Origin: Podarcis tiliguerta
Lineage: Eukaryota
Reading direction: 5' to 3' (one strand)
Length of the DNA: 64,000 nucleotides
NCBI GenBank assembly: GCA_965153285.1
Contig: OZ229111.1
Shown: piece after piece, positions 20,016 through 53,348 of the stretch
Position numbering within the stretch: the stretch's first letter is position 1
How the letters are laid out: each line of letters begins with the position of its first letter
Program-made: the position numbers and the translations under genes
Notes under the pieces: model-generated
The model's input: the letters and a program-made list of their open reading frames with translations, nothing else
Databases searched by the model: none
What the model was told of the DNA's origin: nothing

Positions 20016-20291
<276 letters not shown>

Positions 20292-21008: not shown

Positions 21009-21185
<177 letters not shown>

Positions 21186-22279: not shown

Positions 22280-22369
<90 letters not shown>

Positions 22370-26725: not shown

Positions 26726-27569
26726 CTGTAAGTAAGCAGAGGCAGAGAAAGAGCATTGACAAGAGAGCATGTTGCCTGAAGGCCTGAGCTGCTGAACACT
26801 CCTTAGGAGTCAAAGAGGCTATGTTGGGAAACAGGAGTCCCCTTCACGTCTGCCAGCTCTCATTTCTTTGACGGGCCTATTTGCTGAATCACCAGGAACG
26901 GAGGATGCATTCCCAGCAGGAAGGCCAGAAAGGGGAAGACAACACCTTTCAACAAGTCGGATTCCCAAGGAGCAAACATTCCCTGGAGGGCAGAGAGCAG
27001 ACACACAGCCCCCTCTTTTAGGCTCAGCCATGAGACTCTAGATGAGAAATGGCCAACTGCTGGCCTGTGGAAATATGCACAATCAATATCTGAGAAGTCT
27101 GTGTTACCACTGGAGCCCTAAATCCAGCCTGGAGAATACAGTAGCAACCGGTCACCTCTGCTAAAGATCACGGCTGCTCAGCTTTAGGTCTGTCACCATG
27201 TTGCTTATTTTGGGGGCCAACCTGTGCCCAATCCTTGCAAGTCACAGACAACTTTGGGCCACATTGGGACCTCCAGCCTTTTAAAGCAAGAGCAGGGAAT
27301 AAGGAAACCCATGAAAAAGGAAGGCAGGCCCCACTCTCTCCACATCCATGCCACTCATTTGCAAGGCTTTTGAGGAGTCATACAGATGTGAAATTCAATG
27401 CTGCACCATGACAAACGCTCTGCCTATGCAAGGATTTCCACTTGCCAGATGGAACCATCTCCCTCCCTCCCCTCCATGCTGTTCTGGGGGTACCCCAACC
27501 CCTTCGAGACAATTTCAGGGTGCATGTGGGAGAGCGGGAAGCCCTGTTGCACATACAGAAGCCCTTGTG

Positions 27570-27746
27570 CAGAAATAATGCCTCGGGTTAAGAACTTTGC
27601 TTCAGGATGAAAACAGAAATCGTGCTCCGGCGGTGCAGCAGCAGCAGGAGGCCCCATTAGCTAAAGTGGTGCTTCAGGTTAAAGACAGTTTAAGGTTAAG
27701 AACAGACCTCTGGAACGAATTAAGTACTTAACCCGAGGTACCACTG
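27570..27746. mobile_element. Truncated copy of the mariner-type MITE at 5250
   Basis: High similarity to about 5299-5466, including the right TIR and TA; left TIR missing. Confidence 0.85.
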
Positions 27747-29319: not shown

Positions 29320-29630
29320 GGCAACCATGATGATGAAGAGCCTGGAAACCAAACCCTTTGGGGGAAGGTTGAAGGAGTCAGTGAATTTTACATCCTGGAG
29401 AACAGACTACCAAGAGGCAATGCAATAGCCCTCTGTTACATAGATGGAGCAACTTTGTTTTCTGTTGTTCCAGAAGATAGCACCCGAATTAATGGGTTTA
29501 GATTACAAGAAAAAGGATTTGATTTAGACCAAACATCAGGAAGAACTTCCTGACGGCATAACATGTTCAACAGTAAAGCAGACTGCTTTGGAAGGGGTAG
29601 ATGACTCTCTTTCATTAAGGCCTTTTCAGT
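29320..29630 (+). mobile_element. CR1 LINE fragment (end of ORF2)
   Basis: aatgggtttagattacaagaaaaaggattt...catcaggaagaacttcctgac, NGFRLQE-like CR1 C-terminal motif. Confidence 0.65.
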
Positions 29631-30022
29631 GGTGGCTCCCTGTTGTGAAATGCTCTCCCCAGGGAGGCATGCATGGTGCCATCTTTATCTATATTTAGAC
29701 TTTTCTCTTCACCCAGGCTTTGGGTCCTTAAAATGGGGGGGGGGGGGGGAATTGTGGCCTCTTTTCGTGTTGGCTGGGAATCTATCAGACCTGCCTTTTA
29801 ATTGTATTGCTGTGTTTTTTGTTATTGTTTTCAATGGAAGTTTCTTCGGGTCACTCTGTGAGAAAAACAACTAAATATCAGCATCAAGAACAGTAGGCTG
29901 GCTGGCCACCTATCAACAATACTGCAGTTGGCAGTTGCCACCTCTATGAGTCTATGAAACAACAACCTTACAAACTAAGCCCTCAAGATCCCATCATTCA
30001 CTGGGGCCAAGCACAGCATATA

Positions 30023-30272
30023 CAGTCATACATTGGAAGCCGAACGGAATCCATTCCGGAAGTCCGTTCAACTTCCAAAACACTCAACAACCAAGGCGCG
30101 GCTTCCGATTAGCTGCAGGAGCTTCCTGCACGCAATCAGAACCCGCGGAACCTATGTCAGATGTTCGGCTTCCTAAGAACATTCGCAAACCAGAAGACTC
30201 ACTTCCGGGTTTGCAGGGTTCGGGAGCCAAAAGATTCGAGTTTCAAGGCATTTGGGATCCAAGGTACGACTG
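30023..30272. mobile_element. Tc1/mariner-type MITE
   Basis: TIR CAGTCATACATTGG / CCAAGGTACGACTG (12/14), TA on both sides. Confidence 0.75.
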
Positions 30273-31218
30273 TATCTGCATAAAGCAAAGAGAAGCAGAA
30301 AAGGCCGAGCAAGCACTCCTCAGCCAGGGTAAATTTGCTGAACAGTTCGCTACCATCTAAAGAAATGGAGCCTGACTACAGATTCCAGGGATCCTGGCTC
30401 CCAGTTCAGAATGTGAAGTCTGCCCCTGCATCCACCAGAAAAAGCTCATTTTCAGTCGTCCCCCCCCCCCATCATGGAGATGCAGCTTCTCCTGGCATGA
30501 GATCAGAAGACCGTAAAATGGAGGAGCCCCTGAAATAAGGTTGCTTTGCACCAGCCTCTTATTTCCTACAGGAGAGGTACCTGACACAAAGGGAACATGG
30601 CCAGGCGCTGTCTGGGGATGCTTTCACAGCATCCTCCCACTCCAAACCTTCACAGCAATCCTCCCACCCAATTCCTTCATGCTGCAGCACAGAGCGGCTG
30701 GATTTCCCCGAGACACGCACACAAACAGACGTGGAGCTGCAGCTCAGCCTGTCTGACCTACTTTCCCTTTGTCTCCTGCTTTATCCACATTACTTACAGA
30801 GCGCCACCAGCTTACACCTTCCTGCACAGATCCCAGCCCCCTCCCCACTCCTCAAGGAGATTTCTTTTGCCACGTAAGAAAATTCTGGCAGCTCTTCCCC
30901 CCTTCCTAGGGCCATCTCAGCATTATATTTTAGCTCCATGGGGCCCCCTCCAAAAAGGGGCAGCAATCACCCCTCCCCATCTCCAGAACACTGACCTCTT
31001 CCATAAGCCATGAGGGACCCCCGACAGCGACAGAGCACCACAGGCCTTAAGGCCAGGCTGAGCACTATGATCTCATCTAACCTCAGGCCGTCAGTCGCTC
31101 CTGCGTCATGCCCAAGAGCCTCCAACTGCACTCTAAACCATCAACCCTGTCTTGAGGTCTAGGCAAAGGGAGGGAACAATTCTGCATTCTTGATGGCTGC
31201 TCTGTTCTCCAGACAGAG

Positions 31219-31605
31219 GCCTGGTTCACACAGAACACTAAACCACGGTTTGTTAAAACAAGCCATGAGTTGTCTCACAGATGAGCAAGCAAACCATGGC
31301 TTGTTTTTCTCCAAAGTTTGGTTCAGCTGCTCTCAACTCATGCCTTTGTAGTTCAGTGAGCATCTGGGGCGGGGAGGCCAAACAAACCATGGTTAAGGAA
31401 GGGTGTTTGGCTTGGTGAGAGTTGCAAAACTTAATTACAACAAACTAAGGGTCATAAACCAGCAACGAACCACAGCTTCAGATCATGGTTTGTTAGCAGT
31501 AAACAAACCATAGTCAAGCCACTAGGCAGGCTTTGCATAAAACACTAAGCCGTGGTTTCATAAACCATAGTTTAATAAACCTTGGTTTAGTGTTAGGTTC
31601 AGAGT
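31219..31605. mobile_element. MITE with repeated AAACCATGGTT motifs
   Basis: 24-bp inverted repeat, 31234-31257 vs 31571-31594 (22/24), with internal aaaccatgg repeats. Confidence 0.65.
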
Positions 31606-32005
31606 GTGGTTTAGGGGCTGGGAGTTTATTTTGCCTGAAAGTGAGCCCTGAACATTCGCCTGGCTCCATAATGAAGCCGATATCCCCTAGCAATATGGGC
31701 TTCCAAGTTATGGCACACAAAACTCAAGACATTGCATTGCAATCCAAACATGTGCATTTACATGCCAAATCAGAGAAAGATGTAATAAATACTGTCTCAT
31801 CAATATGTATATTTCAAATAAGAGAAACTGTGGTTTAAAAAACCACTTTGGCTAAAATTTAGATAGGCCACCAGGAACAGGAAAAAAATTCCTTAAGACA
31901 ACCTCTCTCATTCTTGGGTTACCAGATGGTGTTGGACCACATGTTTCATCATTACTGACTGCTGTACAATTTCTCGCCCAGTGAACTTGCATCATTCCTC
32001 AAGGG

Positions 32006-32318
32006 ACATGAGTAGGCAAACTAAGGCCCGGGGGCTGGATCCGGCCCAATCGCCTTCTCAATCCGGCCCGCAGACGGTCCAGGAATCAGCGTGTTTTTAC
32101 GTGAGTAGAATGTGTCCTTTTATTTAAAATGCATCTCTGGGTTATTTGTGGGGCCTGCCTGGTGTTTTTACAGGAGTACAATGTGTGCTTTTATTTAAAA
32201 TGCATCTTTGGGTTATTTGTGGGCCATAGGAATTCATTCATTCCCCCCCCCAAAAAAAATATAGTCCAGCCCCCCACAAGGTCTGAGGGACAGTGGACCA
32301 GCCCCCTGCTGACCCCTG
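32006..32318. mobile_element. hAT non-autonomous element
   Basis: ...taggcaaactaaggcccggggg...ccggccc and ...gacccctg termini; 8-bp TSD CTCAAGGG/CTCAAGGC; internal duplication of about 43 bp. Confidence 0.8.
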
Positions 32319-32639
32319 CTCAAGGCTATAATTGTGATGTGCTAATCTCCTCTTCTCCCAGCTTTCAAATGGCACTGTAAGAGTCATTGTGGTGTAGTGG
32401 CTACATAACTGAATTTGAACCATGAAGCTCAATGGTTTTGAAGGGGTTTTTTTGCGGGGTGGGGCGGGGGGAAATCACACAAGCAACATAACTTAATTCA
32501 CAAGGCTGCTGGGAGGAAAAAACTGATAATCCCACATACGTTACCTTGAGTTCCTTGGAAAAACGTAATACAAGTGTGAAAGTGCAAGTAATTGTTTGTT
32601 CCTCTTGTTGGATGTTGGCAACAATAATCTTGCAGGATC

Positions 32640-33420
32640 AGAATTCTAGGTTCATCAAGTGTAGTATTTGGTCTCTAACCAGGACCAACCACATACCCTT
32701 GGAAAATTGATAACTAGGACATGATTTCAATAATCATCCTCTGTCTGTTCACTGCCTCTGGTAAGGAAAGATATAGTGCATCTGCAAACCATGACCTACA
32801 GCCACTGAGAGACCCATCTATGGGAGCTAACCTATTTCAGTTGACAGTGACAATGACAGTGTTAGTGGCCTTCCAAACTGTGAGATGAATTCCGTAAGTT
32901 GAAAACAGTGCTTGCTTTAATTTGTCCTGAACTTGCTGTCAAAGTATTAGAGAACTTCAAGCTCCAATGTTTTGGTTTCTTTCACACCATTCCTAAATAA
33001 GTGTGCGGCCTAAACTTCTCTTTGAAGGAAGTCCCATCCACCTGAATATCTTTAGCCACCCATTTCTTTACTTTCCTCCCCTTCTGTGATCTCTTTTTCA
33101 AAATCAGGCCACTAGAACTACATTGGCATTCCAAGCACAGCCATACCAGAGACTCATCCTGGCGTACTTGCCGTTTCATTTTCAGTCCCTTTTCATAGTA
33201 ATTCCCAGTATCAGATTTGCTTTTCCTCCACTGCGCCAGCACACTGAGATGACGTCACTGCGCTTTCTACCATGACCCCAAGTCCTCGCTGGCAGTAGTG
33301 ACAGCTCATTTAGATCCCATCAGTGTCTGTGCGGGAGTTTGTGTGTCCCAATGTGGAACACGAGGCGCTCGCTCACTCTGAAGCTCACCTGCCATTCTGC
33401 AGTGCTTCTGAATCATCCAG
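32640..33420 (-). mobile_element. Degraded CR1-like LINE fragment
   Basis: Reverse-complement CR1-like motifs (accatgaccccaagtcct...tcacctgccattctg). Boundaries approximate. Confidence 0.5.
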
Positions 33421-36400
33421 CTTGAAGAGTGCCTTTGAAGAAATGCTCACACCATTTTGTAGATTTCTTTTTTTAAGAAACAAAAAATTATTGGGAGTCT
33501 GAGCACTCCCCTACAGCACAAGACAGGCATGGGCATGTTCAGCTAGCCCTATTTTTAACCCAACAAGCTCTACCCACATTTTCTTCATCTCCCACACTAA
33601 TGGCCCCTATCATTTCATGAAATTTCGTCTAGCGGCTTATTTGATAGATTTGCTTTAAACCATTATTTGAACTCCGTGCAATGGAGGCCTTCTGTGCTGG
33701 AATGCACATCTAATAAAGGTTTTCTAAGTGGTAGAAGCTGCCTTGTGCCAAAATCAGCCCACTGGCCCATCTTGCTCAGCACTGCCTGCAACACTTGACT
33801 GCCAGCGACTCCACAGGCTGGCAGGTGAGACACTTTTTCAACCTTGCTAGCGGTACAAGCAATTGAATTTGGGACCTTCAATGCACACAGAAGTATATGC
33901 TCTGCCACTGAGCTATGGCCCTTTCCAAAGACAGCTGTTCCCTCCCCCTGTATTACAGACCCAACATGAAGAGCTGTATTCTGTGGCCATGGTACCCACA
34001 GCCTGAGTTGAGAAGGCTGGGGAAGAGCGGATTCAGCTTTCCTTTCTGAAGCACTCTCACTGACCAGAATGCTTTGAAGCAAGTTTGCAAAAGGCAGCAG
34101 CATTCTGTTAAGTTTTGTGGCCCTCCAGGTGTCACTAGGCTCCAATTCCCATTTTACAGCATTTTACTGTACAATTTACAATTCAGCATTTTACAATCTT
34201 TTTGCTAGATCTGAAAAACAAAGGAATGGGCTTCATCTTTTCTCAATTTTAATGTATCTGGCACACCTTTGGATTTAATTCAGCTACTTGGGCATACAGA
34301 AAAAATAATTCTAAATGTTCAGGGTTCCACATAGCCTGAAACAGGAGGCCAGCAATACTATTCAAGATTCACATATTTTTGCTTTCCCACGTGTTATAAA
34401 CATTCCCCGAGTCTGCTATAAAATGCTAACTTGCCCAGGGTTCAGGGCTGGTTGCCAGTCCTGAATCCAAGCGTTTTATTGAGATCTATGTATGCATGTG
34501 TGTATATATTGCTTCTGGAAGGGCAGCACTCACCAATATGGAGTGCAGGCACCTTTTGCTACCAAGGCAGCCATTTGGTGCTGGTACCCACAGCACTTTT
34601 ATCAAGACATGAGTACGAGCACCTTATTTATTTTTTTAATTACCAAAATAGAGGAAAATATAGGGTGAAAATATTTTAGCCTCATGGCATGCATCCCCCA
34701 ACCTCCCCCTCTGCTTGCCACTTTTAACGGACACCATCATTCTATGGCTCAACAGCCTGCAGCCCTTGACATAATTGCTAGACTAACACAGCATGCCCAA
34801 CTTCCAATCTGACCCACTTTTTCCATCCTCCAGGGCAGAACTAAGAGCTGCTCACATAAAACAATGAAGGAAACCCAGGATTTTAACATTGCTGTAAATG
34901 GACAGCAGCAGCAGCATGGACCCCTCCCTGGCACCCAACCCCCTCCCAGAAGAGGCCAGCAGCAAAAAGACAGCACCTCTTACTTTTGGGGTGCAACATG
35001 AACCTAGAATTTCCCTCTTCAGACAGACATGAACTGCACCAGTAAATAGTCTATTTTTCTGTATGTCACTGACATTCCAAAGGTCTTAAAATGCCCACAG
35101 TGCTTTTTTTCTCTTTTCAAAAAGTTGTTCTCTCTTTCAGCTCACAAACTTACATACTTCTGCATGTCTCGCAGAGAGTCCTCTGAGTATGCAGAAATCA
35201 TGACTTTATTTTTGGGTGGCCCTTGTTTCCTTTAAGAGGGTTCCCTTCATGAGATCTGGAGTGCATAGGGAGGGGCTGTGGAATCAGTTAAAGTGGGCCA
35301 TCCATAAGCCTCAGCCAATATGGTTAATGGTCTGGGATTATGGGAGTTATAGTCCAGCAACTTCTGGGGGACACAGGCTCCCCACCCCAACTTTAGGGCT
35401 TCAGCAAATTTCTGTTGCAAATTTAGATACCCAATATATGTGTGAAAACATCCTTTCTATGACCACTAGAGGGCTCTTCTACCTTTCTTGTAATAGGTTT
35501 CTTATGCTAGCTGCTGTGAGAAATAGTACTGTATACTGTATACAAGACTGGGTTGGCCCAAGGGGGTTGGATTCTCCAGCCATTTCCCTTCCTAATTATG
35601 CTCCCCTCCCCACACATCCTCAACCACTGCTGCAGCCAGAATTGCAGATGACAACCGAACAAGAAATTGGTTGGCTGAATAGAAGCAACAAGGGGGAAAG
35701 AGCAGAAACACACCATTTGCCTCATTACGACAAAGCCCCAGGTGTTAAAAGCATCTCTTGCCACAGAAATAACTCTCCATTACACCATTTGAGCTGAGAG
35801 CACCCTTTAAACAGTGAACCCGATGAAGGCATTTTCTATTCACGTTGGCTTGGTCAGACTCCATGAATCCAGCTTATGGAACTAATCGACCATGTCCAAT
35901 TGCACAAGAGCCTCACAGACTGACCTGTGCCAAGATAAACACCAGAGCATAGGGGACTAATAGAGATGCAGCCCTAGTAATCTTTCAAAGCCTCCGGTAT
36001 CTCCTTCTTCTCCCACTGTATCCAAAACACAACTACTAGGCTGCATTGCTGGCAGATAAACTGAGCACAGGGCACTCAAGCAACATAGGCAGGCACTCTC
36101 TTTAACTGCGCCGATCTCCACCATGCACGCTTTCGTCCTCAAAGAGTTTCCCCATCAGGCTTATTCACCACGCAGAAGCTGCTCTCACCAGACACACAAA
36201 TCCACCTCTTTTCTCTCTGCACTTTGGAGATCAGCAAAGCAACAGCCAGGGTGGAGCACCTTCTTCGACAGAGGGGCACCTCAAGAAAAGCTGCAGGAGC
36301 TGAAAGCTCAGTGCTAATCCACATGAAATACAATTTGCATATGATTTTCATGAGCATGGCAAATTAGAGCATCGTATGATGGACGTGCTGCGTTTATTTT

Positions 36401-38400
36401 TTAAAAAACCTTATTTTGTGTTTCCTATGGAGAAAGCCACCTCCAAATGTTATTTTGGCTGCTCTGCAGCTTAGGTCGCAGTCCTCTCACAAAATACTTG
36501 GTGGAAATGCTTATGATTAAGCTGCATATAAACGCCTTAAGAATAAACAAATGGAAGGGAATACAAAAGAAAATCTGCACTAGGGAATAAAAGCCCCAGT
36601 GTTATTTACGGAACGCATTTTGTGGAACCACGCATGCTTCAAATAATGGTTGGTATGGCACCATTTGCATTCCCAGGCAGATGGTATCTTCTGCATGGAG
36701 TAAAAACAAGGTCCAGGCTGCTCAAGGAGATGAACAGCACTACCTATCAGAAGGGAAGCTGAAGTAACTGTAGGTTACTAGGCATTCTGGCCATACAAGG
36801 GGGAAAGACTACAGGCAATAAACTTGTGCACAAACGCATATACATGCAGTGCCAGGAAATAAATAAAAAAATTCAAAGCAGGAAATAGTGGGAGAGAGCT
36901 GAACAGTCCTTGTTGCTTGTGAGGAGACCCTCCCCAGAGCCTGAAAAAGACATCAGGGACGGCGGAGGAAGCCCCAAAGAGACCCGAGCACACAGCCTCC
37001 CTCCCTAACAGCTGATGGGCGGGGTACTGCAGCAGCCACAGCCGCCACCACCACTACTTGCCTGCGTGTCCTCCAGCCTCCAACCAGCCCCAGAGCTGAT
37101 ATTGTAGTCTGCATTGTAGAGAAAGCTGGAGAGCAGGGAAAAGCAGGTGTTCAAAGGCTTTTTAGAGGGTGCTCCCCACTTACACAATTTTTGCTTATGT
37201 GCGTGGGCCCTGAAACATAATCCCTGCCTAAGTGGGGGGGACACCTGTATAGCAAGAGGGCACATGCGACTGAGAAACCTCTGGGCCTCCAGATACTGCT
37301 CACCTCCAGCTCCCATTGTCCCTTACCATTGGCCATGGTGGCTGGGGCCGATGCGAGTCAAAAGTCCAAGAACAGCTGGAGGGCCCCAGGTTCCCCACCC
37401 CTGCTTTACATGCAGAAGGCTCCAGGCTCAATCTCTAGTATCTCCAAGTAGGTTGGGAAAGACCTGTCTGAAATCCTGGAAAGGTGCTCGCAGTCAGTAT
37501 AGACTAGAGATGGGAACCTGTGGCCATCCATGTTGCTGGGCTACAACTCTTATCATCCCTGGTCATTGGTCATGCCAGCTGGGACTGATGGAAGATGGAG
37601 TCCAACATCTGGAGGGCCAGAGGGACTCCATCCCTAAATTAGATTGACCAATTGTCTGCTTTGGTGGAAGGTAGCTTCCTGTGTTCCTGACACACATACA
37701 CTAGCCTCCCATTAGGAACTTCTGGTTGGGCCCAGATAAAAATCCCCATCTTCCAGAAGTTAAACTTCAATTGGAAGGGGTAGGACCTTTCCAGCAGGTT
37801 TGGAATGAGTTCCCAGAAGAAGTGTGGCAATGATTTTCACGATTACATTTTAGAAATGCAAGGGAAAGATCTTTTTGCAGGACTGTTGGGAAGCAGTCTG
37901 CGTGGGATTCTTATTTGTACTGATCTGCTGCATCTGAACATTGCCACCTCAATGTTCCTCATTTAATGTTTTACTGGTTTTGTTTCACCACTTTATCACT
38001 CTGGGTCTTTTCAGCATTAATTTAGATATGAAATTAGAATTTAATCTTGCTCCTGCACTGCTAGCAACTGGAGACGGAAACCAATATATTCTCCAACACA
38101 AGGGGCCTCCCTCCTCACAAGGTTTCCAAAACAACAACGAAAAAGCATCATCATTTGGCTAACAAGTCTCTTGAGGGGCAAGTGTTGGCTTTGGTGCGTA
38201 ACTTGTATGTTATCTCAGAGGGATCTTAGACATCCTAAGAGTCTTGGTGATAGGCAAGCACAGGCCAGCCAGATGTTATCAATACACTGCCTTGCATTCT
38301 CCTGTCTTTTTCAGTGGCTATACAGGAACAGATGCCATTGTAATCTCTCTAGTATAGAAAGCCAGTCAGCAAAAGGATGGGATACAGACTAGCAGATTTA

Positions 38401-38586
38401 GGGCAGATCCATGCCGTACCCTTGAAGCACAACCAACACACAGTTAAAGCACATAACTTCCTCCGAGGAATCCTGGAATATGTAGTTGAAGGTACTGGGG
38501 GGGGGGGAGAAACAGAGTTCCCAGGATTCTTTCGGGAAAGTCATGCGCTTTAAATATGTGTTGGGATGTATGGTGTGCATGTGCCC
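38401..38586. mobile_element. PIF/Harbinger-type MITE
   Basis: GGGCA...TGCCC termini (14/19 TIR match) with TTA on both sides. Confidence 0.7.
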
Positions 38587-38749
38587 TTAATTTCTAGGCC
38601 AAGTGCAGGTAATCTGGTTCTATAACCTCACCCCCTCAACCCTTCTAAGAAATATCCTATGACCAGTAAACCAATGCCCACAATTGGAATCAACCATGGG
38701 ACAGATTTATGCAAATTTCATTTTGGTTGTGATACTCTTGAGGATGTGA

Positions 38750-38985
38750 AATATTTATTTTTTTATTTCTTATTACATTTATATCTCGCTCTTCTCCCAA
38801 GGAGCTCAGGGCACCATACGCAATTCTATTATCCCCCCTTCCTCCAATTATACTAACATAAGTTGTGAGCAGATTAGGCCAAGAGTCACTGATCCAAGGG
38901 CACCCAGTGGGTTTCATAGCTGAGTGGGGATTAGAACCCAGGGTCTGCCCAGTCAAAGTTCAATACTGTAACACTACATCACAAT
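38750..38985 (-). mobile_element. tRNA-derived squamate SINE (same family as 26078; further copy near 44450-44630)
   Basis: Reverse complement of ggttctaatccccactcagctatgaaacccactgggtg, with an AT-rich tail. Confidence 0.6.
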
Positions 38986-40257
38986 GACTCTATTTTTTAT
39001 TGGGGGCTGAAACAGGAAGTCTCATGACATCTCAGCTCAGCCATGACATCTGTGAACATGGTCCTAATAAGTGACAGGACAGTGTTTCTGAGAAAAAGCA
39101 TGGTGCAGTTTATTCACCAATAGGCTGCCCCTCACCCTATAACTGAGACTGTAGTGACCAGGTCAGAAGGTGTAACAACAGATATTAATAGGGGGAGAAA
39201 GAAAGGCCTCTAGAGAAGACCAGTGGTCAAAGTGAACAGGCATAGGTTTCCAGGGGGAAATGTTTTCACCTGCCATTTGTCACTGAAAGCCAAATTAGAT
39301 GTAACACTTAAATGCACCATTAGGAAGCCAGTCAGTTAAAAAAATATATAGAGGGAAGTTTAACCTTTTCCTCCTACCCCACAAATGATGAGCCTTCTTC
39401 ACCCTTGCCATTCCCATGAGTTTGGAATACTGATAAAATGTTAGAATTCCAGGAAAGAAGAAAATCTGCTTCATGACAGCAGAAGATTCATCCATATCCT
39501 TAATGTTTAGCAGAATCTAAACAGCTATTTCTGATACTTCATCACAACCTTGAGGGCTAGACATTTTATTTAAATACAATCATGCCCAATGGACTGGGTG
39601 AAAGTTATCAGAATGTGCTTTAGATGGCTTGTCAGCAAGGAGACATTCTTGAGCATGTTGATCCTTAGATTTCTCCTAATTGACCCTCCTTACTCTTTAT
39701 GATGCCAACACCTTTGATTTCTGAGGCTTTGAATCTACTACTTAGAATAAACTGGCAGATTCTTCCTTCATATAAGCATTTAAAACAGCAATTAGGATGG
39801 TAATAGCAGCAAGAAAGCTCAGCTCAAACTACGACGTGCTGCAAATTCATAAAGCAAAAATGGTACCCTTAGAGAGAAAACAGCAGCTCTGAGCATCTTT
39901 TGTTCAACGCTCAAGGTTCTTTAACTGGAAATAAAAGGGGATAAATTCTGGAGTTAGTGGAAACATAATTCATCAGGAATAACTCCCCCAAGGCTAACCA
40001 TTTAAATAGTTTCTACATATGTCTATGACAGTCAGAGCTGATTTGTTGTAGGGGCTGCATGTGAGTACAAACCCATCTGCTCAAAAATTTACTGTGCCAC
40101 ATTCAGCGTCACAGATAGATCCATGTGTGTCTTTGTCTTTAGAGCCCTTTTCTCACCATACATTCCTTGAAAGAAGCAGCTGTCTAATAAACACAGGGAG
40201 CGAGGGAGAAAGCAGACAGCAGTCCGTTCACCCACCCAGGACCCCGTGGTTCCTTAC

Positions 40258-40264
40258 CATCCAT
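40258..40264 (-). CDS. PRKACA: Candidate short alternative first coding exon of PRKACA (MD|VKEFL...)
   Basis: ATG GAT G|GTAAGG: strong donor, phase 1, in-frame upstream TAA at 40331-40333, in a CpG-retaining block without obvious repeats. Confidence 0.5.
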
Positions 40265-42419
40265 TCGGTGGCCCTCAACCCCAAGGGTCCACCTGGTGAC
40301 CCGGCTGTTTCCGTAGCTGCAACCATACAGTTAAAAGGTCAAAACGGGTGGTGGGGAAGGGCTGACCCGACGGCTCATGGGGGACTTTGCCCCCGGTGGC
40401 AAAAGCAAACAAGGCCCCCGCCTGGAGCTCAACTTCTCCTGGAAGCGAAAGAGAGTCCCCAGCCAGCAAAGGGCTGAGCGCAGCTCCAGGGCACGCCTGT
40501 TTCGCCTTCTCTCCCTTTCCTTCGACTGCATCAGTGTAGGCCACCGTTATAGCCAGCAGGAGTGATCTACCATAGCACCTGGAAAGGCTCCTCTGGAACA
40601 CCTGCTGCTTATTCAGACACAGCAGGCTCCGCCTTGAAGATCCACCATACACGGAGCTCCTGAGATTCCAAGTGGAGCAGCGAGGCTTGAACTAGGCCAT
40701 GCCAACGTGGCCTCTGCCTAGAGATGAGGTCGAGAAAGTCATCGCAGATGCTGTGCAAACCATTTCCCCCCCAGTGTAACACTTCCCCGAAGTCCAGAAA
40801 CAACTGTTCTGTAAGTGGGACAGCTGGTTACGAAACAATGCTGGGGGGGAGAAGGGGGGCAGGGGATCACATGATGGCAATGCAAAGAGAAAGAGAGGAG
40901 GAGGTGGCGAGAAAGATACTGCCAGTCACCAAAGGCAGCTCATTCACAAGCCTATCACAAAAGGCTGCCGTAGATCCTCCCCCCACGCCCTGCAAACTGA
41001 CCCAAGCCAAGACCAGCCTGCATTATTAGGCAACTTGTGTTTTTGCTTGTTTTCAAGTGGTGCCTATACATCTCTTTTCTATTCCTCAAGAGGGGCAAGG
41101 AAGCAGAGAAAGTAAAAGCCCAGGTCTCCAGCTGGTGCCGAGAGAAACCCTTTCTTTTGTTCCCTCGGAATGAAAACATTTTATCAGCCCAGCCGTAAGA
41201 TTTTCATTCTGCCATTAGTGATCTCAGTTCCACCTTGAGCTCCTGCTTCACTCACCCTCATTACTTGTTAGGTTTTTACTTTGATGTGTGTGAGTGAAGT
41301 GCCATGCGGCTGCTGAAAAAGAGAGGAAGCCCCAAAGATTGAAAAGGCATCGCCTCTTAACCCAGCCACCCCAGAGCAGATCCTAAAAACAAACAAACAC
41401 CAGAGCAGAAAGCAAGTTCAAGCACATGCTTGCCAAGAACAGATAGCCCTGTGTCTCTTTTCATTAATAGAAACAGGTTAACACAGGCTTAAAGTAACCT
41501 ATACAAGAGTAGCTCCTAATCCAAAAGAAAATACCAAGGGATGAGAGGAGAGTGGCTTGTTTACATGGCCTGCAGGTGATGACCAGTGAGATAATAAGGC
41601 ATGACAGCTACACCGCAATTGCCAATTTACTAGAAGATTAAGCATATACAGCTATCCAGCACAGGACTCTCTCGAGGTGGTGGCCCAACAGAAGTAGCTA
41701 GAGATAAGTAGCAGGATTCACGTGGAAATACGAAGTAGAATGAAATCTACAACATAGACACACACATATATATATTTGAGGGGATAAAAGGAGTCCTATC
41801 CAGCACAAGTACAATGAAATGCCAGAAGGCCCAAGGCTTCACATTGCTCCCTCAAGTCAGAGCTGGACTAATTTCTCAAGAGAAAAGCAGTACAGTGATT
41901 TCAGAAGGAATGACTGCTCGGTAGCTGAGCTAAAGATAACCTCCATACAGAGGATGCTCAAAGATCAGCCCAACCTTCTCAGAGCGTCTCATAAGCAAGA
42001 ATGGATCAAAAGCAACCCCCCCCCCCAGCTTTTGCTTTTCGGGCATCAGCTGGCTGAGTCTGCCTCAGAATTTTGTAATAGCCCCTGTGAAGAGCATCCA
42101 ATGGTTTCTGGCAGCATATGGGAGGGAGGCTCTTTCTGAAAGTGCCAGGTTCTGAATGTGTCTGAAGGAATGATGGTCAGCAGGCTCCGAGAATACTGGA
42201 AGGGAGGGAGATACCGTCAAACAACTGATGGCGTCAGTCCTTGGTTTTCTTCATTTCAGGAGCACTTCTTACTGAAGTCTGTTCAATGGGAAGGTGACTA
42301 CCCAACTGGACAATTTTTAATTTATATATTTCTACTGCATCAGACCAACACTTACCTGAATCTAGAACCATGGAAGGCACCACATTAAGCCGCATGAAAT
42401 GCAAATCCATTAACCTCAC

Positions 42420-42500
42420 AAGGTATCTGAAGAAGTCTGCATGCACATGAAAGCTCATACCAAGAACAAACTTAGTTGGTCTCTAAGGTGCTACTGGACA
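42420..42500 (+). mobile_element. Penelope-like 3' terminal fragment
   Basis: ctgaagaagt...catgaaagctcatacc...gttggtctctaaggtgctactgga motif. Confidence 0.45.
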
Positions 42501-45249
42501 TTTTTTAAAAAAAATTTAAAATATATTTCTATGCCACTTTCAGACATGGCAAACATCCTTCCAACCTTCAGACGCACATGGAAATGTTTCACCTGTAAAG
42601 TAGTGCAAAGCACTACAGTTGGAGGCAAAACAGCATGGTATACTTCTTGATGGATCAGACTACCCTAGAAGGCCTATTACCAACAGGTTCCAAGGTGAGT
42701 AATGGTTTTCTTTAGTGATGCAGGCACAGTTACATATTTTTTAAACCTATTTGGTCTGAAATTGTTTGAGCCCTATATGCCATCTTTTTTAGATTTTATG
42801 ATCTCCCCCCAAAAAGGGGGGGGGGAATCATGACCATGCCTACCATGTAACAAGGTAGAGTTCTGCTGTATGTGGCACCAAAGGGGCAGTGATGAAGAGA
42901 TGGATGAAGGCAAGAATCTGTGCCTGAATAGGTGGCAAAGCCATTTTAAAATGCTGACCCTAGTAGACATAATTCGGGCTCTACTTGAGGCAGCAAAATG
43001 CCTAGGGGTGGCACAAAAGAGATTCCCAGAAGACCCCAAGAATGCCACACCAAATGATGACTTGCAATCATGGAGAACACAGGTGTTCCAGGCAGCTGCA
43101 TATCTCATAACAGAACTCCCTTTCTCTAAGGGTCAGACAGTAGAAGCAATGCAAGATGCCCCCATTTGCACCATCAGTCAGAGGCAGATATTAAGGTAGG
43201 TTGACTTCCTTTCAACTTTGTTTTGGAGGTCCCATTTCCTGCCCTGATCATATTAGGAAAGAACATCAGGCTTTGATTGCTATCATAGATTCTCCTTTCA
43301 AAACATTTTTCCAGCCAACACTTTTCAAAAAGCTAATGCTCTTTTTGAAGCTTTCAGCTGTTAAACATTCATTGCTATTCTGCTGCCCTTCCTCTTCCTA
43401 TTTCAGGATCATGGACTTCAGCAGTTCATAGTTACTTTCTTTTACATAGCCAACTGTTTTCACAGACTCAAACATTTCCTTCCTATTAGTCAGATTCTGA
43501 TCTAAAAATAGCATGTCCCTCATTGTTTCCTCAACTTTCTGAAGGAGAAGTTTGTTGAGAACAAGTAGGAACCCTGTTTATGTATTCCATTTAAAATATG
43601 GCAAAAGTGCTTTTGTACTTCTACTTGATATGGAATTTTTTTGCTAGTGCAGTCCAGTCCTGCGAGCAGCCAACGTGGAAGCTTACATGCTCAGTGGAGG
43701 AATCTGGAGTTTTGCTGTGGCTCTCTCTGTCTTGATTCTCTCCTCTCAGCAGCCACCAAACCCTTTCTATCATAATACGGCTCCCTTTCTCACTTAAGAT
43801 TGGACATTGTTTTTTCCTCGCGAATTTCATTCTCTTGCATTTCCAGAATCTATGGCTCTTGGGCAGGTGTATCAATAAGAAACAATGACACCATTCAACA
43901 CTGGCATTCAAGCTGCCAGTCCCTGGCTCACTTCCAGAATAGTCACCAGTTGGCGTTCTATGCACACAGATCCCATTCTGTGCTTGTGGGCAGTGGCAGG
44001 GGGCAGAGTCTCCACAAAGCACATTCACTGCTTTAGCACTGGCTATGTTCATCTGCTTGTATGCAGCTCATTTTTTTAAAAAAATAATAGAGCCCATAGA
44101 GCACAAGTCTCTTGTTAGGGCCCTTCAATATTTTTTTATGCAACGAGTATGCAGTTGCAACTCATGTCATGTGCAGTTGAGATGCCTTTCTCAGAAGCTG
44201 TGCTTCTGTTCCAAGAGTTACTGCACTTTGCCAGTGATGGCACTTACTATTTATGCCTGGGAAAAGCAATTCTTCCCATGCATAGGAGTCTTTGGTGCTA
44301 TTACTACTGTGTGCAATGGGGCTGAGCAAATGCTACCAGCACCTGCCACTGGATAGGTGCAGTGTTATAAGTGACCATTCCATTCCTACCTCCCACCCAG
44401 TCCTGCTATAATATTCCTACCTTTATAGCTGAAAGATTCCTGCCATACAGTTGCTTTTAAATTATACTCCGTTTTTCAAGGAAGTCCAGGGAGTAGCATA
44501 TATGGTTCTCCCTGCTCCCTCAGCTTTTATCCTCCTAGGTACCCTGCAAGGTAAGTTAAGCAGGAAGAGCTACTGTCTCAGGACAACCCAGTGAGCTTCA
44601 TGGTTGAGCAGTGACTTGAACCTGTTCCCTCTTGAGCAGCTTTCCAAGAGCTGTATTCCAGAGAGGAAGCAGGACCAGAAGCAATAAGTAGGTGGGGCGA
44701 CAGATGCAGCCCTTACTACCTTTGTATAGTAGGTTGCATTCTGACCATGCAGAAGCCACATCATGCAGAAGCTGACCATGCAAAAGTACATATCTCTCCA
44801 TCCCAACGAGGAAGTGGGATCATTACAGTTCAAGGATGCATTCCAGCCAGCAAAAGCACTTGAGGAAGGCGTGAAGCAGGGCTGGTGAGATGTGTGGACT
44901 GAGGAGGAGAGGCAAGGGGTTTGAGAGGGTGGTGGCTTCTCAAATCTAGCTAATCTTTCTTCTGGCCCAGTTTTGCTACCAATGCTGCTTTGGTCACCAT
45001 AAAGTATTTGTGTGTGAGAGAGGGGGGAGGTGTGGGGTAGCTTTGATGATATATTTTTATAATAATATACTTAATTATACCCCACCCTTTTTCCTGACAG
45101 GACTCAAGGCGGCTTACAGGTTAAAAACAAGAACCACTGATACTCCTGGACATCTCACTGGCTCTTCATACCATCTCTCTTGGTATACTTCTAGATCTGT
45201 TATCGCACATGTGATAAGAGATACCACTCTCTTCTAGTTCTTTTTCCAC

Positions 45250-45560
45250 TTGACTGGTTGATTCCAGAAGATGTTGGAGGATCCTTCTTGTTTCTCATGC
45301 TGTTTAACATCTAAATGGCATAGCTGAGGAAAATCATCCAGGAATTTGGAGTCAGGTGCCATCAAAATGCTGAAAACACCTAGTTATTTTTCTCCTTTTA
45401 AATCTATTCCAGTGAAGTAGTAGATGTTGTGAGCCGCCGCCTGACGGACCAATAAAATGTAGCCCAATTCAAAAAAGACAAAAGTTTTGTTGGTAGGTGG
45501 TACGATGATCAAAGAGTTTGTAATTTGCCCTTTTGCAATACTACCTCAAAGATGAGGTTC
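45250..45560 (+). mobile_element. L2-like LINE RT fragment
   Basis: Translates to a degenerate LFNI...IIQEFGVRCHQNAENT (YADD region). Confidence 0.55.
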
Positions 45561-48254
45561 AAAGACAGGCAATGTTAAGTGCTCAAGTCCTCAACTAGGC
45601 AGGCAAAAATTACTGACAGTAGCAAACACAGTCCAGGGAAGCTTCTTTAGGAAGTAGCTGACAAAAGTGGATGACAACAGACTGCGCCTCTACTGCTCTG
45701 CTTATAAGACCCTAAAGCAAAGCATCAAAATTACAAAATTAAGGCAAGAAGCTCATTGAGAACATCTTCCACTAAGTTATATGTGCAGAATGAAGACATT
45801 TTAGATACTGGAGGAGGTACCTTGAGACATATTGCAAGAACAAAAAGTATCAAAGCAGAAAGGAGCGAGCACAATTTCTGCTGAATTCTTCAGTGCCTTC
45901 AAAACAGAATTATGTAATAATTATGAGTGTACAGGTGCAGTCAGAATAATTTAACACAGCACCCAGAGAAAAAAGGTTGAGCACTCATCTCTCTTTAATC
46001 CTGAAGCCTTTATCTCAGCTACAGGTTGCTTTAATACCAGTCTGTCATGTTCTGTAAGAGGCCCACCTACAGGAGAGAGACACTGGTTTTCCACCCTTCA
46101 ACCACAATGCCCCAGTGGTCTAGAAGATGAAGGACAAAGTAGCTTTGCCAGAGGCCCAGAACACAGTGACCCTAATCAATTTCCCTGGGAATAGATTGAA
46201 CAGCCAGCCATGTCCCTAACACGGCTGCGCTCAATAGGAAACTGCAGCCGATTCAGGCCAAGAACCAAAATTAGCAGGCAAGCAGTGAGTCAAACAGCAC
46301 CTCCCACCAGCTATTGTTTAGCACTTGCCCATCAGCTATTGCAGAGCTGAGGGTGCCAGCCCAACTTAGGCTTCAAAGTGGCATTCTATTCCACAATGTT
46401 GTGAACTTGCCATAGCATAAGATAGGGAAGGTACAAGGGAAATGGGGCGGGGAGAGGGAGAGGGAGAGAAAAAGCAGCAAGCCTTCCTACAAAAAGTAAG
46501 GATTCTTAACTTCAATGCCTTCTTGCACTATGATTTAACGAGATAACCATTCAATGCATGTACCAATCACACTTCTCCTGCAACGCTAGATGCACAATTG
46601 TCATAAGAATAATATGCAGTCCTTGCATCAACCAGGCCACATGGAGAAGTGGGGTTGCTGCTGCTTTATGCCTTGTCTTCAAGAGAGGCGAACTAATCTT
46701 TCAAGTTGTCGTAGAGCCTAAAGCACAGTGGGAGAAATCAATATTCTTAAATCAACAGTACCAAGACCTAGGAAGCAAAGGACCAGACCACTTGAACATA
46801 TTTACACTTGGGAACATAATTCATCTCACTGAATGCGTACACCACAAATCTTGCAGGGATTTCTCATAAACAGCTCTACCTAGCTGCCAACCGTTCCAAG
46901 TCTGCACAGGTTTTAACTATGCATCTGACTGTTACTAAGGGAAGGGAATCCCTGGGAATAGAGACAACATGTGTTGCCTAAATTACAAGTCCCTTTGACA
47001 TCTGCTCTATATAACTGGCATGGGAAGGCTTTGGTGGGCTTTAGGAGACCTGGAGAAGCAACTGGTCCTGCTAACACTAAGCTTCCAGGAGTGATCAACA
47101 TAGGAAGTCTGCCACGTTTCAGCCAGGAGTACCAATAACACATAGTCAATCCTTGTTTAAATGAAATTGGCCAGCCAACCTAGCTCTAAGGGCGCAGATG
47201 CTTAAGGCCTAAAATTTCACTGACAGATGCACTCTATGCATCTTCCCCAGTGGGTGGATGCCAGGTGGTTGACAAGTAACATACTTGTTTATTGTTGCTT
47301 AGGCATTTAGGGTTGCCAAGCTAATATAAGCTCAAAGACAGTCACATTTAAACCTGGATTTGGACAGGGCAAGGTAGGCAAGCAAATCCAGCCAGCAGTT
47401 CTGGAGAAGATGACACAAATGTAGAGAACACCTTGTTTGAAAGGACATCTCTGAAAAACAGAAACAAATTTTTCAGTGCTTAGCAGGGTAGACAAAACCC
47501 ACCCTGATTTAACTAGCATGCTTTCTTTATGAGGATTCTATAAACATGAAATACAGGGATCACTGATAGATCCAGAGAAATCTCATCCTACTGCAGAGTT
47601 GCTTAATTAGTTAATTCAAATGAAACTATGCAGGAAGCTAAATAGCCACCAATCATTCATGACGTTACCCTGTATTTTTATGCTCTAGGCCAGGGGTGGG
47701 CTGAAGATACTCTACTAACAGATCCCCAAGGGGTTTATAGTAGATTATTAAAAAACTAAGGATTAGAAATCCTTGCCAATGGCAGCAACAAAATGACCCC
47801 CTACTGTCTTACATTATACTGTTGAAATGAACTGCTCCAATTGGCTTGTCAATTTTGGAAACATCGGAGGAGATCGGAAGCACTTCACATTTCCCAAGTG
47901 CTCTGATCTTGAAATAAATAAAAAACCAAAAGAAGACAGAGCTGATGGCAGATGCGCATTACAGGTAATGGCCTTGCTGTGTGTTAGATTGGGTGGATTG
48001 GCTGATGCAAAGGGACCAGCCCTGCAGTGACCTTCTGGTCTTCAGCAAGCCAGAGAGTTGTGCAGTGTTAGCTGGAGTTCTGATTTATTATCTGCCTGGC
48101 AAAGAAGAGGCAGGGTGTTGTGTGGTGAGCACCCTCTCTGGAGCAGGCTGAAGTCTGGCAAAAGCCTGGGGTTCCTCACAAGAGGGTTCAAGGCAACTGA
48201 ACATGATAACTAATCAGCAGCTAGTGCAAATCATGTAGAATCAGCATTCATATA

Positions 48255-48512
48255 CCGTATTTTTCGCTCTATAAGACGCACCAGACCACAAGACGCACCT
48301 AGTTTTTGGAGGAGGAAAACAAGAAAAAAAATATTCTGAATCTCAGAAGCCGGAACAGCCAGAGGGATCACTGCGCAGTGAAAGCAGCAATCCCTCTTGC
48401 TGTTCTGGCTTCTGCGATAGCCGTGAGCCTGCATTCGCTCCATAAGACGCACACACATTTCCCCTTACTTTTTAGGAGGGGAAAAGTGAGTCTTATAGAG
48501 CAAAAAATACGG
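48255..48512. mobile_element. pogo/Tigger-type MITE
   Basis: 23-bp TIR CCGTATTTTT(C/T)GCTCTATAAGAC (22/23), TA TSD. Confidence 0.9.
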
Positions 48513-48529
48513 TACATTAATTACCGATT

Positions 48530-49050
48530 CAAAGTGCCTTGCATTCTGGCAGCAACTAACTGAGGTTTCCAAACACTTTTGAAAGGCAGCCCCACATAAA
48601 CAGTTACAGCACTGTCATCTGAAGGTCACTAGAGGAATGACTGTGGCAAGATTCCCCTGTGTCAGGGAGGATGATAGCTGTTGCACCTGGTGATACTGGG
48701 AAAAGGCACCCCTCACCACCTGCAGAAACAGGACCCAGATCAAGAAGCACCCCCAAACTAAGCACCTGCACTTTCACACTTTCCACCCAGAACAGGCTGC
48801 AAAACCAATCTCATATCACATGGTCCAACTACCAACAGTACCTCTTCTGTCTGAATTATGTTTCCCCTCATTGCATCCTATCCAATCCATCACAGATATC
48901 AGACAGCGATTCAGCCTTTCAACTATCTTACAGGAACAAATGAAAATGAGAGAGAGGTGGCTGTCATCTGCATACTGATGACTCCCCAGCCAAAATCTAC
49001 AATTGACCTCTGTCAGCAGTTTCATGTAGATGCTGAACAGAATCTACATG
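48530..49050 (-). mobile_element. L2-like LINE RT fragment
   Basis: Minus-strand ORF contains SHQYADDSHL (RT YADD motif). Confidence 0.7.
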
Positions 49051-50341
49051 TGTATTGTATATGCTAAATAGTTCCAAAATGTTCTGCTGGTGGTTTTGAA
49101 CACTTTCCTTCATGTGCAACACACTCAGATGCAGCATGGAGGAGGTGTCAATGCCAAAAGATTAAAGGGGCCAAAGAAGAATCTGGCATCAGATGTTCTA
49201 CAAGCTTCTATTTTAGACCAAGCAGCATTGCCAAAACATTGTGACAGTTTTGTTTAAACATACTTGAGGATCCAAGAAAAGACTGCATTCACTCCCTTTT
49301 GCCTAAGATGAAGGAGTAATGTGTGGTCCAGACAGAACAATAGAAAACCTACCATCTATTTACAACCCATCACCCTAGAGGTAGACAACACCACGACTTA
49401 AGATACAGCCAGTGACAGAAATAGAATATGACATCACACCAACTCAACAACAAAAGCTACAATCCTGACTGGTAGTGGCAGCAAAGAGGAAAAAGCAACA
49501 ATCATCAGCCCATGACTTTCACTCACATCACTCTGTCAACCTCAGACTGAAATTCCCTATGTCAACAACTCTGACCACACATTTTAACCAAAACAGCTAA
49601 AGTGACAACATCAGTTGGAGAGGCTGGAGGAAAAACTGTCAAAATGGGAAGAAAGTTTTGAAACACACACGGGCAAAGAGAATTTGCTTCTTAATAATGA
49701 CCTTTGCCAACATCTTCCCCAAAATTTGCAATTCTCCCCCCAAAATGTGGGAGAACATCCAGGAACGCTCCAGCTATCCTTTCTCTAGGTCAGGGAACTT
49801 CTGCCCCGCCAATGTGAGACTACAACTCACACCATCCCTTCCTATTGGCTATTTGGGCCAGGGTTGATAGAAGCAGAAGCCCAACAACTTTGGGAGAGTT
49901 ACAGGCTCCCCACCTCTACTCCATGCAGAGTTAGAGCTTGTAAAGAAGATTCAGCAGCATCCGGCACCAACAGCTTGATAACAAATAGTAAGAAGTTGCA
50001 GTGGGCTTTTGAGAACCGATGGGGCTTCTCTAAGGCCAAAATCAAAGCCACACACCAAGCAGCTGTGGCCTCATTAAAGTTGGGCACCCTACACTTTAGC
50101 TTAGCATGAGGAAAGAGGTAGTCAACAGTCATAGCCAGAATGGCTGTCAGAGCTAAGGCTATAGCCATTTGCGGGCTTCTCTGAAAAATATCAGAGCCCT
50201 ATTTCAGATTCCAGTTACACACTCAACCACAAGCATACGCATGCACCAAGAGGCACAGAACAGCGGCAGCTCTGGAGCAGAGCCTCAGAGGAACCCACCG
50301 ATTCAGGCACCCCTGGAAACCGTGCTCCCTTGTCAACTCAC

Positions 50342-50531
50342 TCTGCTCATTCCAGGCTGCCGTGTGCTCAGATTCATAGGCTGCCTCCCCAACGTTCGGT
50401 GCCCCAGCATCACTCCGTGGCCCCCAGTAAAAGATCCGCCCTGCCAGACTCTCCAGTTTCTGTAGCGCCGACATCTTACACCCTTTGTCCTTGCTGGAGT
50501 TTTGAGAGTTCACCTCAGCTCCATGGCTCAT
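50342..50531 (-). CDS. PRKACA: PRKACA long alternative first exon (CalphaL type, paralogue of the PRKACB Cbeta2 exon)
   Basis: MSHGAEVNSQNSSKDKGCKMSALQKLESLAGRIFYWGPRSDAGAPNVGEAAYESEHTAAWNEQ plus A|GTGAGT (phase 1, joins as MKEFL). Matches the Cbeta2 motifs ALQKLEGFASRLF and SEHTALWDRSMKEFL. Confidence 0.9.
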
Positions 50532-53348
50532 GTTTCTCTTTTATTTTATCACCGGTTCTTTTCCTCTGCCCCAGCTCTGCTCTCGGAGCAAACACAGCCA
50601 AGCAGCTCAGTCAGGATCCAGGAGGGCACTCTCTTCAGTCATTGCTATTTGCCAACAGGTAGAGGCACTGCTTTTCCTGTCCCGCCACAGGAAGAGAGGG
50701 GTAAAGGCAGCAACTGGAGAACAGACACAGTCCCAGATTCAGCAGAGCTCTTAACATTCCCCTCCAACTGATTCACACAGGCATTTGGCTTGAGCCGACT
50801 GCTCTCAACTTCCATCAAACCCACCTCCCTGGACTATAGCATTCATGTCAGTTCAGCAACAAGTCTGGGGCAGCCATCCATATCAGGTTTTCCCAAGCCC
50901 CCACGCTAAGGCTCAGAAAAGCTCCAAGACAGTTCATTCCATATTCTCTCTGTTTAGAAAGAAATACAGGGAGCCTGGTCACTTACACAGCTGATCAGAG
51001 GGTGAACAGCAGGCAGATTTGATTAATACAGAGGGAGGAAGGCCTGCCAGATCAGCAGTAGCAAGAACTATGCAATGAGGCTTAAAATAGCTCACAAATT
51101 CTCCGAATCTCTTTTGCCCTCAGGGCTGAAGGTAGGGCAAATAAGGAAATTGTCAGGTAGGGAAGCCCTATTATCTTCCAAAACGAAGTGATTCTTTAAC
51201 AGAAAGAAGAAACAATTCAAGGAGAGAGGGAGACTGAGATAGAATCATAGAATTGTAGAGTTGGAAGGAACCAAGATGTTCAGATAACTTGATGAAACTA
51301 GAGCACGCCAAAGCAAACCTCTGATGCTGTAGATGGAATAAGACAAGGTGTGGCCGTCCAAAACTCAAAGTAGGAGCTCATTCAAGCCCATATCCCCTTG
51401 GATGCTCCATGCTCTGGAGATAGAAATCACTCTTTCTAAACACTAATACAACATTCCAAGGGTGAACATTCATTTGCAGAATGGCAGTCTTCATAACTTC
51501 TGGATTCTATTGCTAAGCAGCCCCCAAAAGCTCATATTCTCTGAATGAAGCAAAAGATTACTGCACAGTCCAGAGTGTGTGGATAAACATGGGAAGAGAA
51601 ACCAGAAATCTTGCTTCTAAAGCTTTGTCCTTCTCTCAAGGTTAAGAAGCCTTTCTTAGGCAAGGCCATCCAGAACAGAGAAGAATGGAGGTAAGGAAAA
51701 GGAAAGAAGAAAAAATACAGGGCGACGTCTCTTTCTCATAGGACTGCTTGCCAAAGAGCTCTAAAAATATTAGATGTCACAGTGGACCTCCAAAGAACAA
51801 CCAAGTCATAAGGGACAGGAAGGAGTTATTGTTTTAGCCCCCCAAAGCTACGCAGGACGTAAGTGACCAACCGGCCAACCAAGTGCATCCACAGAAAAAG
51901 CTGGGTCCAAAACTGGAAGCTGAATTCGGAGTCGCCTTCCCACGTACTCTGAGGACTACGGGGTTCAGTTTCCATATTGCTATTTCCAGACGACAGCCTT
52001 GTTCTCTACGCCTTCAGCACAGATCCAGACTCAGGCTGCATAGTTCATTCTGCCTGTGCTGCAACTCTCCATCGTCCCTCAAAGCAGAGCTGGCTCTTGA
52101 TTCAGAGACTGTCTGCAGGGCAAGCAGAGTGGCAGGGTAGCTTGCGGTATTGTTTCAGGAAAAGCCCCAAAGGAACAGCCTTGAAGTGGGAAGAAGAAGA
52201 GAAGAGGCTGGGCATGGTGCCAGCTTTGTACAAAGTCCTTAAAGGAACAGGCTACGAACTTTGCATCTTCTGCACTAATGTTCAGCAAAACATGCACGCA
52301 AAGGTTGTCCGCGAGGAAACTGCCCTCCACCATTGTCCATTCTCTTCGCTGAAACTGCTGAGATCACCAGCTTAAGGACTGAAACTCTGAACTATTAACT
52401 AAGAATGCAAAGAGGATCCCTTTGCTGCTCTGCATTTCATAAAGTTCAGAAAGCCTCTCTACAGTCCAACACTTTATCATCATTCAGATCACAAAGCAAG
52501 AACATAGTCACTTCCTCTGAGAGCAGTCAGATTTGACTACTGCCAAAGACAGCTTACTGAACTAGGTAGACTAATGATGCACCCAGGAAGAACAACTTCT
52601 CACATGGCTGGAAAATGCTTCAAACTGAGTATTAAGCATGCCATTTCTGGAAATCCAAACAATTATTCTAGACCCGACTTACAGAAAAGACAAAAGTTCA
52701 CAACAACTACTGTTCATACTGCAAATCCATTGGGTGCATGTTAACGCATCTCTAGCAGAAAAACAAAGGAAATAATGAGACTCTTCTTCACAGTACAACA
52801 ATTCAGATGAATCAATCCAGATCAAATACATCAATGTGATATGTAGCAGAAGTAGAGCAAACAATTTCCTTCTTAGACTGACTTGTAGGCAGTATTAGAA
52901 ACCAAGTACTTAGAGCAGGGTAGACCTACTAACTGCAGATAAGTTGCAAGGTTTCCAAGCTCTCAAGAAGTTAGAAATCTTAATTTGTGGCATTAAAAAA
53001 CAAACAGGTTCTCACCTTTGAAGACACAGAAAGGGTTAAACATTGTGCAGGTGAGGCTTCATTAGATCAGGTGATTTTTTATTTATTTTTTTGTCATCCC
53101 AGGAGGCAAATCTCTGACGGGTTCAGCACAGAAGCTTAAAATATTTTTTAATGAGCATGCTGGAATAAATGCAACCAGCCACAGCAGCAGAAAGCAATGG
53201 TTGTGTAAGACATGGACTGGCACACTAAGAGGACAGGTGGAAGAGTCCTTGAGGTGCTCTGCCCTCCTCAGCAATTTCCATGCCTCTGACTTAGCAGGGT
53301 TACCCTTCAACACTACAAGCAGATATGCAACCAGATGAAGAAGACCTA

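Follow-up and report, generated by a model that had tools for sequence, protein, structure and literature searches.

The minus-strand segment 50342-50531 of the window, the whole stretch of 64,000 nucleotides that was analysed, very probably represents the coding portion of PRKACA exon 1-L, encoding the long catalytic subunit CalphaL of protein kinase A (PKA). This exon and its product were described by Soberg, Moen, Skalhegg and Laerdahl in 2017 (PLoS One 12:e0181091, PMC5526564), and the lizard exon 1-L is thus an already known kind of isoform, which agrees with the view of an earlier note on this DNA that it is an easily missed known form and not a new class. The same note had stated that long Calpha forms are reported in non-eutherian vertebrates and are absent from placentals, which proved too narrow: exon 1-L occurs in most vertebrate classes and is missing from all mammals and birds (PMC5526564; review of 2018, PMC6143667).

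The reading frame opens with the ATG at 50531 and runs through 63 codons, MSHGAEVNSQNSSKDKGCKMSALQKLESLAGRIFYWGPRSDAGAPNVGEAAYESEHTAAWNEQ, down to position 50343 of the minus strand, after which a single extra base, A at 50342, closes the exon and is followed by GTGAGT at 50341-50336. An in-frame TAA is situated four codons upstream, so that 50531 is the first in-frame ATG of the exon. The peptide starts with Met-Ser-His and has no N-terminal Gly. The acceptor of exon 2 is pyrimidine-rich and clean (...cttacttacag/TG AAG GAG TTT CTT...), and when the donor at 50342 is joined to it at 26725 the product reads ...WNEQ-M-KEFLAKAK across the junction, the split codon A/TG giving Met. The 63-codon frame with its phase-1 donor (A/GTGAGT), this junction, the distance of about 23.6 kb to exon 2 (23,616 nt of intron by measurement) and a second in-frame ATG at 50474, which corresponds to Met20, had all been proposed in the earlier note and were found exactly so (Table 1). 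With the 63-aa peptide as a query no Pfam family was matched, the PDB sequence search gave a chance match only (E=1.5) and the ESM Atlas search returned nothing usable.

Table 1. Coordinates of exon 1-L, the remaining PRKACA exons and the neighbouring gene in the window.
Feature	Position	Strand	Basis or remark
Exon 1-L, minimum 5' UTR	50532..50826	-	reach of X1 contig; X10 to 50786
Exon 1-L, coding part	50342..50531	-	63 codons + first base of split Met codon; sequence, contigs, conserved ORF
Exon 1-L ATG	50531-50529	-	ORF reading
Second in-frame ATG (Met20)	50472..50474	-	invariant in 10/10 aligned sequences; would yield 380 aa if used as start
Predicted helix, residues 22-34 (ALQKLESLAGRIF)	50430..50468	-	AlphaFold2, hydrophobic moment, conservation, published signature
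Trp60	50352..50354	-	four residues before split-codon Met; equivalent of Trp59 in human Cbeta2
Exon 1-L 5' splice site GTGAGT, phase 1	50336..50341	-	used in X1 and X10 contigs
Intron between exons 1-L and 2	26726..50341	-	23,616 nt
Exon 2 (TG + KEFLAKAKEEFLKKWENPLQ)	26664..26725	-	acceptor upstream, GTATGA donor downstream; spliced contigs match 26696-26725
Exon 3	24679..24807	-	AG/GT borders
Exon 4	24482..24580	-	AG/GT borders
Exon 5	22281..22363	-	AG/GT borders
Exon 6	21033..21159	-	AG/GT borders
Exon 7	20418..20513	-	AG/GT borders
Exon 8	20145..20267	-	AG/GT borders
Exon 9	17037..17201	-	AG/GT borders
Exon 10, coding part	14827..14952	-	includes stop TAG 14829-14827
SAMD1 (winged-helix + small helical domains)	6534..7229	-	directly downstream of kinase gene; Pfam domains

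The search of sequencing runs gave 19 runs with matches, from 8 studies and five organisms, and four of these runs were mapped on 49500-51500. The evidence consists of assembled contigs from two runs, X1 (organism A) and X10 (organism B), each of approximately 65-130 Mb of contigs; their type, RNA, is a guess, in favour of which speak the junction and a depth confined to the exon. The X1 contig (810 nt, depth 154) spans 50342-50826, and the X10 contig (491 nt, depth 8.4) spans 50342-50786. At 50342 both contigs depart from the window, and the 30 letters that follow are identical to 26696-26725, a stretch that is unique in the window and with which exon 2 begins, while the intron flank next to the exon (49500-50341, 840 nt) was free of any contig or read in the four mapped runs. 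Transcripts of exon 1-L are joined to exon 2 at 50342>26725 in two related organisms, at the very junction for which reads had been suggested as a check. No reads on exon 1-L were present in the raw bulk RNA runs X22 and X24 of organism A, of which 12-13% each was read; its expression is therefore not ubiquitous and appears to be tissue-restricted.

At least 295 nt of 5' UTR precede the main ATG, the true transcript start lying beyond what the contigs can define, and they contain four upstream ATGs, at 50815, 50784, 50757 and 50642, with open reading frames of 56, 3, 40 and 11 codons, all of which stop before the main ATG. Further upstream, a low-depth contig of X1 (197 nt, depth 4.4; minus strand, 50892-51457) joins 51319 to 50949, omitting 369 nt that are bordered by a GT donor (cagag/gtttgc) and a pyrimidine-rich AG acceptor (tttctaaacag/A). 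This junction may belong to a non-coding leader exon further upstream, or the CalphaL transcript may have an alternative start here; the leader piece is not connected to 50826 by any contig. A separate 34-nt piece at 51239-51272 was covered at very high depth in all four mapped runs (X1 bin approximately 19,700), with reads continuing on either side into unrelated sequence, and probably derives from a transcribed repeat of high abundance.

Homologs were sought with HMMER against the full library (3 relatives) and with a word search (8), the latter restricted to candidates of 0.55-1.75x the query length; all hits were short ORFs, with no Cbeta2 among them, and the full-length CalphaL and Cbeta2 proteins have presumably been merged into 50% clusters together with short-headed isoforms. 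Eight related ORFs were 75-100% identical to the exon 1-L peptide: one (P0004) matched the ORF of the window at 100%, five Logan ORFs were 75-81% identical over the full length, and P0009, which starts at Met20, was 84% identical over 70% of the query. Among the named sequences, P0003 (TFJ95974.1) from the turtle Platysternon megacephalum is annotated as 'protein kinase, cAMP-dependent, catalytic, alpha', and P0002 (CAM4681303.1) from the turtle Caretta caretta is a partial product whose long head continues into Calpha-type exons 2 and 3. The ORF is consequently kept in at least eight other sequences, including those of two named turtles, which answers the question raised previously about its conservation in other reptiles. 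Both public turtle models of exon 1-L look faulty: the 'PRKACA' entry of Platysternon, an ORF of 78 aa, begins at Met20 and reads beyond the exon end, and the Caretta product has neither the Trp motif nor Lys16 at the junction.

In the alignment of 10 sequences 19 columns were invariant and 11 nearly invariant, and the identity to the window was distributed unevenly along the peptide: 58-84% in residues 1-19, 94-100% in the helix region 20-37 (17-18 of the 18 residues in all homologs), 47-67% in the linker 38-52 and 82-100% in the junction-proximal residues 53-63, where the Caretta model reached 27%. The same gene model is the single exception to the presence of Trp60, found in 9/10 aligned sequences. 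The homologous genomic ORFs keep the read-through residues SEL/SEW, encoded by the splice-site consensus, and past these donor residues they diverge and stop at differing lengths. At the nucleotide level organism B differed in the coding part at two positions only (50406 and 50433), both of them synonymous third-position changes, and the 5' UTR carried substitutions and indels in both organisms A and B. Such a pattern, synonymous in the coding part and with indels in the UTR, is that of a coding exon.

Among the alternatives, the one that survives best accepts a real spliced exon and places the main start of translation at Met20 (50474), the first 19 codons being a leader and the product having 380 residues. 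It is rather improbable, even though Met20 is one of the invariant residues, two database ORFs (P0003 and P0009) begin exactly there, the contexts of Met1 and Met20 are alike (A at -3, non-G at +4) and the upstream ATGs suggest a complex initiation. The opposing evidence comes from the region that would be lost: residues 1-19 are still conserved between the lizard and its relatives to the extent given above, with no frame breaks, and share a common beginning M-[SN]-[HY]-G-A-E at Met1, while the turtles carry the frame further upstream (MKGN...). Moreover, a ribosome scanning past the upstream frames would meet Met1 first.

It is less probable still that exon 1-L is a non-coding leader, or the start of a regulatory transcript, whose ORF yields no stable kinase isoform. 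The four upstream ATGs could indeed lower or regulate translation, and the exon was absent from the reads of the two bulk RNA runs. Against this, the frame stays open and is in phase with exon 2, the amino-acid conservation is patterned from lizards to turtles and peaks at the helix and the Trp motif, the differences seen in the coding part are synonymous, and the paralogous Cbeta2 has been described as a protein (PMC5526564). A processed retrocopy in DNA as the source of the spliced contigs, conceivable as long as the RNA type of X1 and X10 is a guess, has a negligible probability in view of the depth of 154 on the exon against zero on the 840 nt of adjoining intron in runs of this size, the same junction in two organisms and the second GT-AG junction just upstream (51319/50949).

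The identity of the kinase gene was deduced from its exons and its neighbour. Splice sites of exons 2-10 are canonical, and the ten exon lengths add to 1200 nt with the stop, i.e. 399 aa, a figure obtained by exon-by-exon arithmetic; searches and folding were likewise carried out on separate exons. Exons 3 and 9 matched solved mammalian Calpha chains over the full length (75 and 115 bits, PDB) and no matched chain was named Cbeta, so that these matches do not separate the paralogs, and the alpha/beta call was made from published signature residues read on the exon translations. Soberg et al. (2013, PMC3625193) gave Gln35, Thr37, Glu64, Gly66, His68, Ser109 and Glu334 as characteristic of Calpha, and Asp42, Gln67 and Arg319 of Cbeta. 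Measured against this list, which was compiled without reptile Calpha sequences, the lizard gene has six of the seven Calpha residues (Gln35, Thr37, Glu64, Gly66, Ser109 and Glu334, with Tyr replacing His68) and none of the three Cbeta residues, which are substituted by His42, Asn67 and Lys319. An ORF downstream of the kinase gene (6003-7361, minus strand) contains the Pfam domains SAMD1_WH (E=2.4e-27) and SAMD1_SHD (E=6.2e-18), and SAMD1 is also the direct downstream neighbour of human PRKACA. Signature residues and downstream SAMD1 together identify the gene as PRKACA and not PRKACB, in line with the original assignment. The opposite reading, an ordinary Cbeta2 exon 1-2 of PRKACB, could appeal to Arg-Leu-Glu-Tyr in exon 4 and Glu-Asn-Pro in exon 2, which may be Cbeta-like, but it is refuted by the signature residues and has next to no probability given also the SAMD1 neighbour and the turtle homologs that are named Calpha or continue as Calpha.

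This lizard's Calpha departs from mammalian Calpha at several positions that are commonly taken to be fixed. The motif GNYFAMK contains Tyr68 and Phe69, His68 having been called Calpha-invariant in 2013, and the turtle fragment P0002 retains His68, unlike the lizard. The motif GYIEVTDFG has Glu before DFG, a place taken by Gln in mammalian Calpha, and FIPKCKG gives Cys318. These oddities are located at 24679-24807, 21033-21035 and 14827-14952 on the minus strand. A run of 137 N at 13754-13890 falls in or next to the 3' UTR, some 0.9 kb past the stop codon of PRKACA (14827).

On the minus strand no MGN-type coding start of exon 1-1 was found from 26 to 64 kb of the window, and exon 1-1 must therefore be located outside the window, separated from exon 1-L by more than 13.5 kb on its upstream side, which is consistent with the published position of exon 1-L between exons 1-1 and 2 of PRKACA (PMC5526564). 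A weak CpG-rich patch at 57001-57500 (GC 0.55, observed/expected CpG 0.66), 6.5 kb upstream of exon 1-L, contained no exon 1-1-like coding sequence.

AlphaFold2 run on the alignment predicted a single helix at residues 22-34 (block pLDDT about 85), with pLDDT below 70 elsewhere, so the tail outside the helix is predicted to be mostly disordered. Over the same residues the helical hydrophobic moment has its peak, with values of 0.56-0.63; its maximum was reached by 134 of 2000 shuffles and the amphipathicity is modest. Since there is no Gly after Met1, CalphaL would not be N-myristoylated in the manner of Calpha1, and an N-terminus with an amphipathic helix and without myristoylation stands as a prediction on both counts. 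According to the published hypotheses, the helix forms upon binding a partner or a membrane, and the pocket left empty by the missing myristate is covered by the Trp (PMC5526564).

In the preferred reading, exon 1-L is an alternative first exon that has a promoter region of its own and is joined without intermediate to the common exon 2, and the mRNA so formed in all likelihood encodes CalphaL, a PKA catalytic subunit of 399 residues in which the kinase is kept from Lys16 onward. The 14 myristoylated residues of Calpha1 would be replaced by 63 residues plus the split-codon Met, i.e. by a flexible head of 64 residues composed of a mostly disordered tail, the conserved helix 22-34 and the conserved Trp just before the A-helix. 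Conservation points to translation that begins at Met1 or, in part, at Met20, and the helix may act as a docking or membrane-binding element. A more elaborate scheme, put forward tentatively and with low expectation, has two CalphaL proteoforms, one of 399 aa from Met1 and the other of 380 aa from Met20 starting exactly at the helix, the choice being tuned by the uORF-rich leader and the optional leader exon; translation would thereby control whether the docking helix is exposed.

PKA Calpha is among the best-studied kinases, and its long isoform, absent from mammals and birds, is for that reason little known and readily overlooked when genomes are annotated. The coordinates, the verified junction and the conservation map provide a usable non-mammalian model of CalphaL in a lizard, with which the binding partners of the CalphaL/Cbeta2 N-terminus, and the replacement of myristate by Trp in the hydrophobic pocket, can be addressed. 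Current understanding is unchanged: the results of Soberg et al. (2017, PMC5526564) are confirmed in one more species, and the value lies in the verified annotation.

Compared with the published CalphaL (PMC5526564), which was defined from mRNA, the isoform has the same long alternative 5' exon of PRKACA with its own ATG, no Gly2, a tail predicted to be disordered, a putative helix and a conserved Trp, and differs in nothing essential, the window containing the ortholog from a lacertid-type lizard. What is added to the published description are the exact coordinates, the 23.6-kb intron, the four upstream ATGs in a 5' UTR of 295 nt or more, the invariance of Met20 and a possible minor leader exon further upstream. 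Exon 1-L is paralogous to PRKACB exon 1-2, which encodes the head of Cbeta2 (63 residues in human), and the signature common to CalphaL and Cbeta2 consists of Lys/Arg21 and Phe30 in a putative inducible helix, Trp59, the absence of an N-terminal Gly and a disordered tail (PMC5526564). Lys25 and Phe34 of the lizard peptide, nine residues apart in the helix, correspond to Cbeta2 positions 21 and 30, and Trp60 to Trp59 with equal spacing to the junction, so that the Cbeta2-type motifs with similar spacing claimed in the earlier note are indeed located at the published signature positions. The head has 63 residues in both proteins. In human Cbeta2 the split codon likewise gives Met before KEFLAKAK. 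For the lizard exon, the paralogy with Cbeta2 is supported by the published work (PMC5526564) and by the match to the positions named there. In contrast to CalphaL, Cbeta2 is encoded by PRKACB, a gene present in all vertebrate groups including mammals. Cbeta2 levels are highest in lymphoid tissue. Other Calpha isoforms, Calpha1 (exon 1-1) and the mammalian Calpha2/CalphaS (exon 1-2), share with CalphaL exons 2-10 and the phase-1 junction with exon 2, but their heads are of a different kind: 14 residues with myristoyl-Gly1 in Calpha1 and a sperm-specific head just a few residues long in mammalian Calpha2, in both cases with neither a long disordered tail nor a helix.
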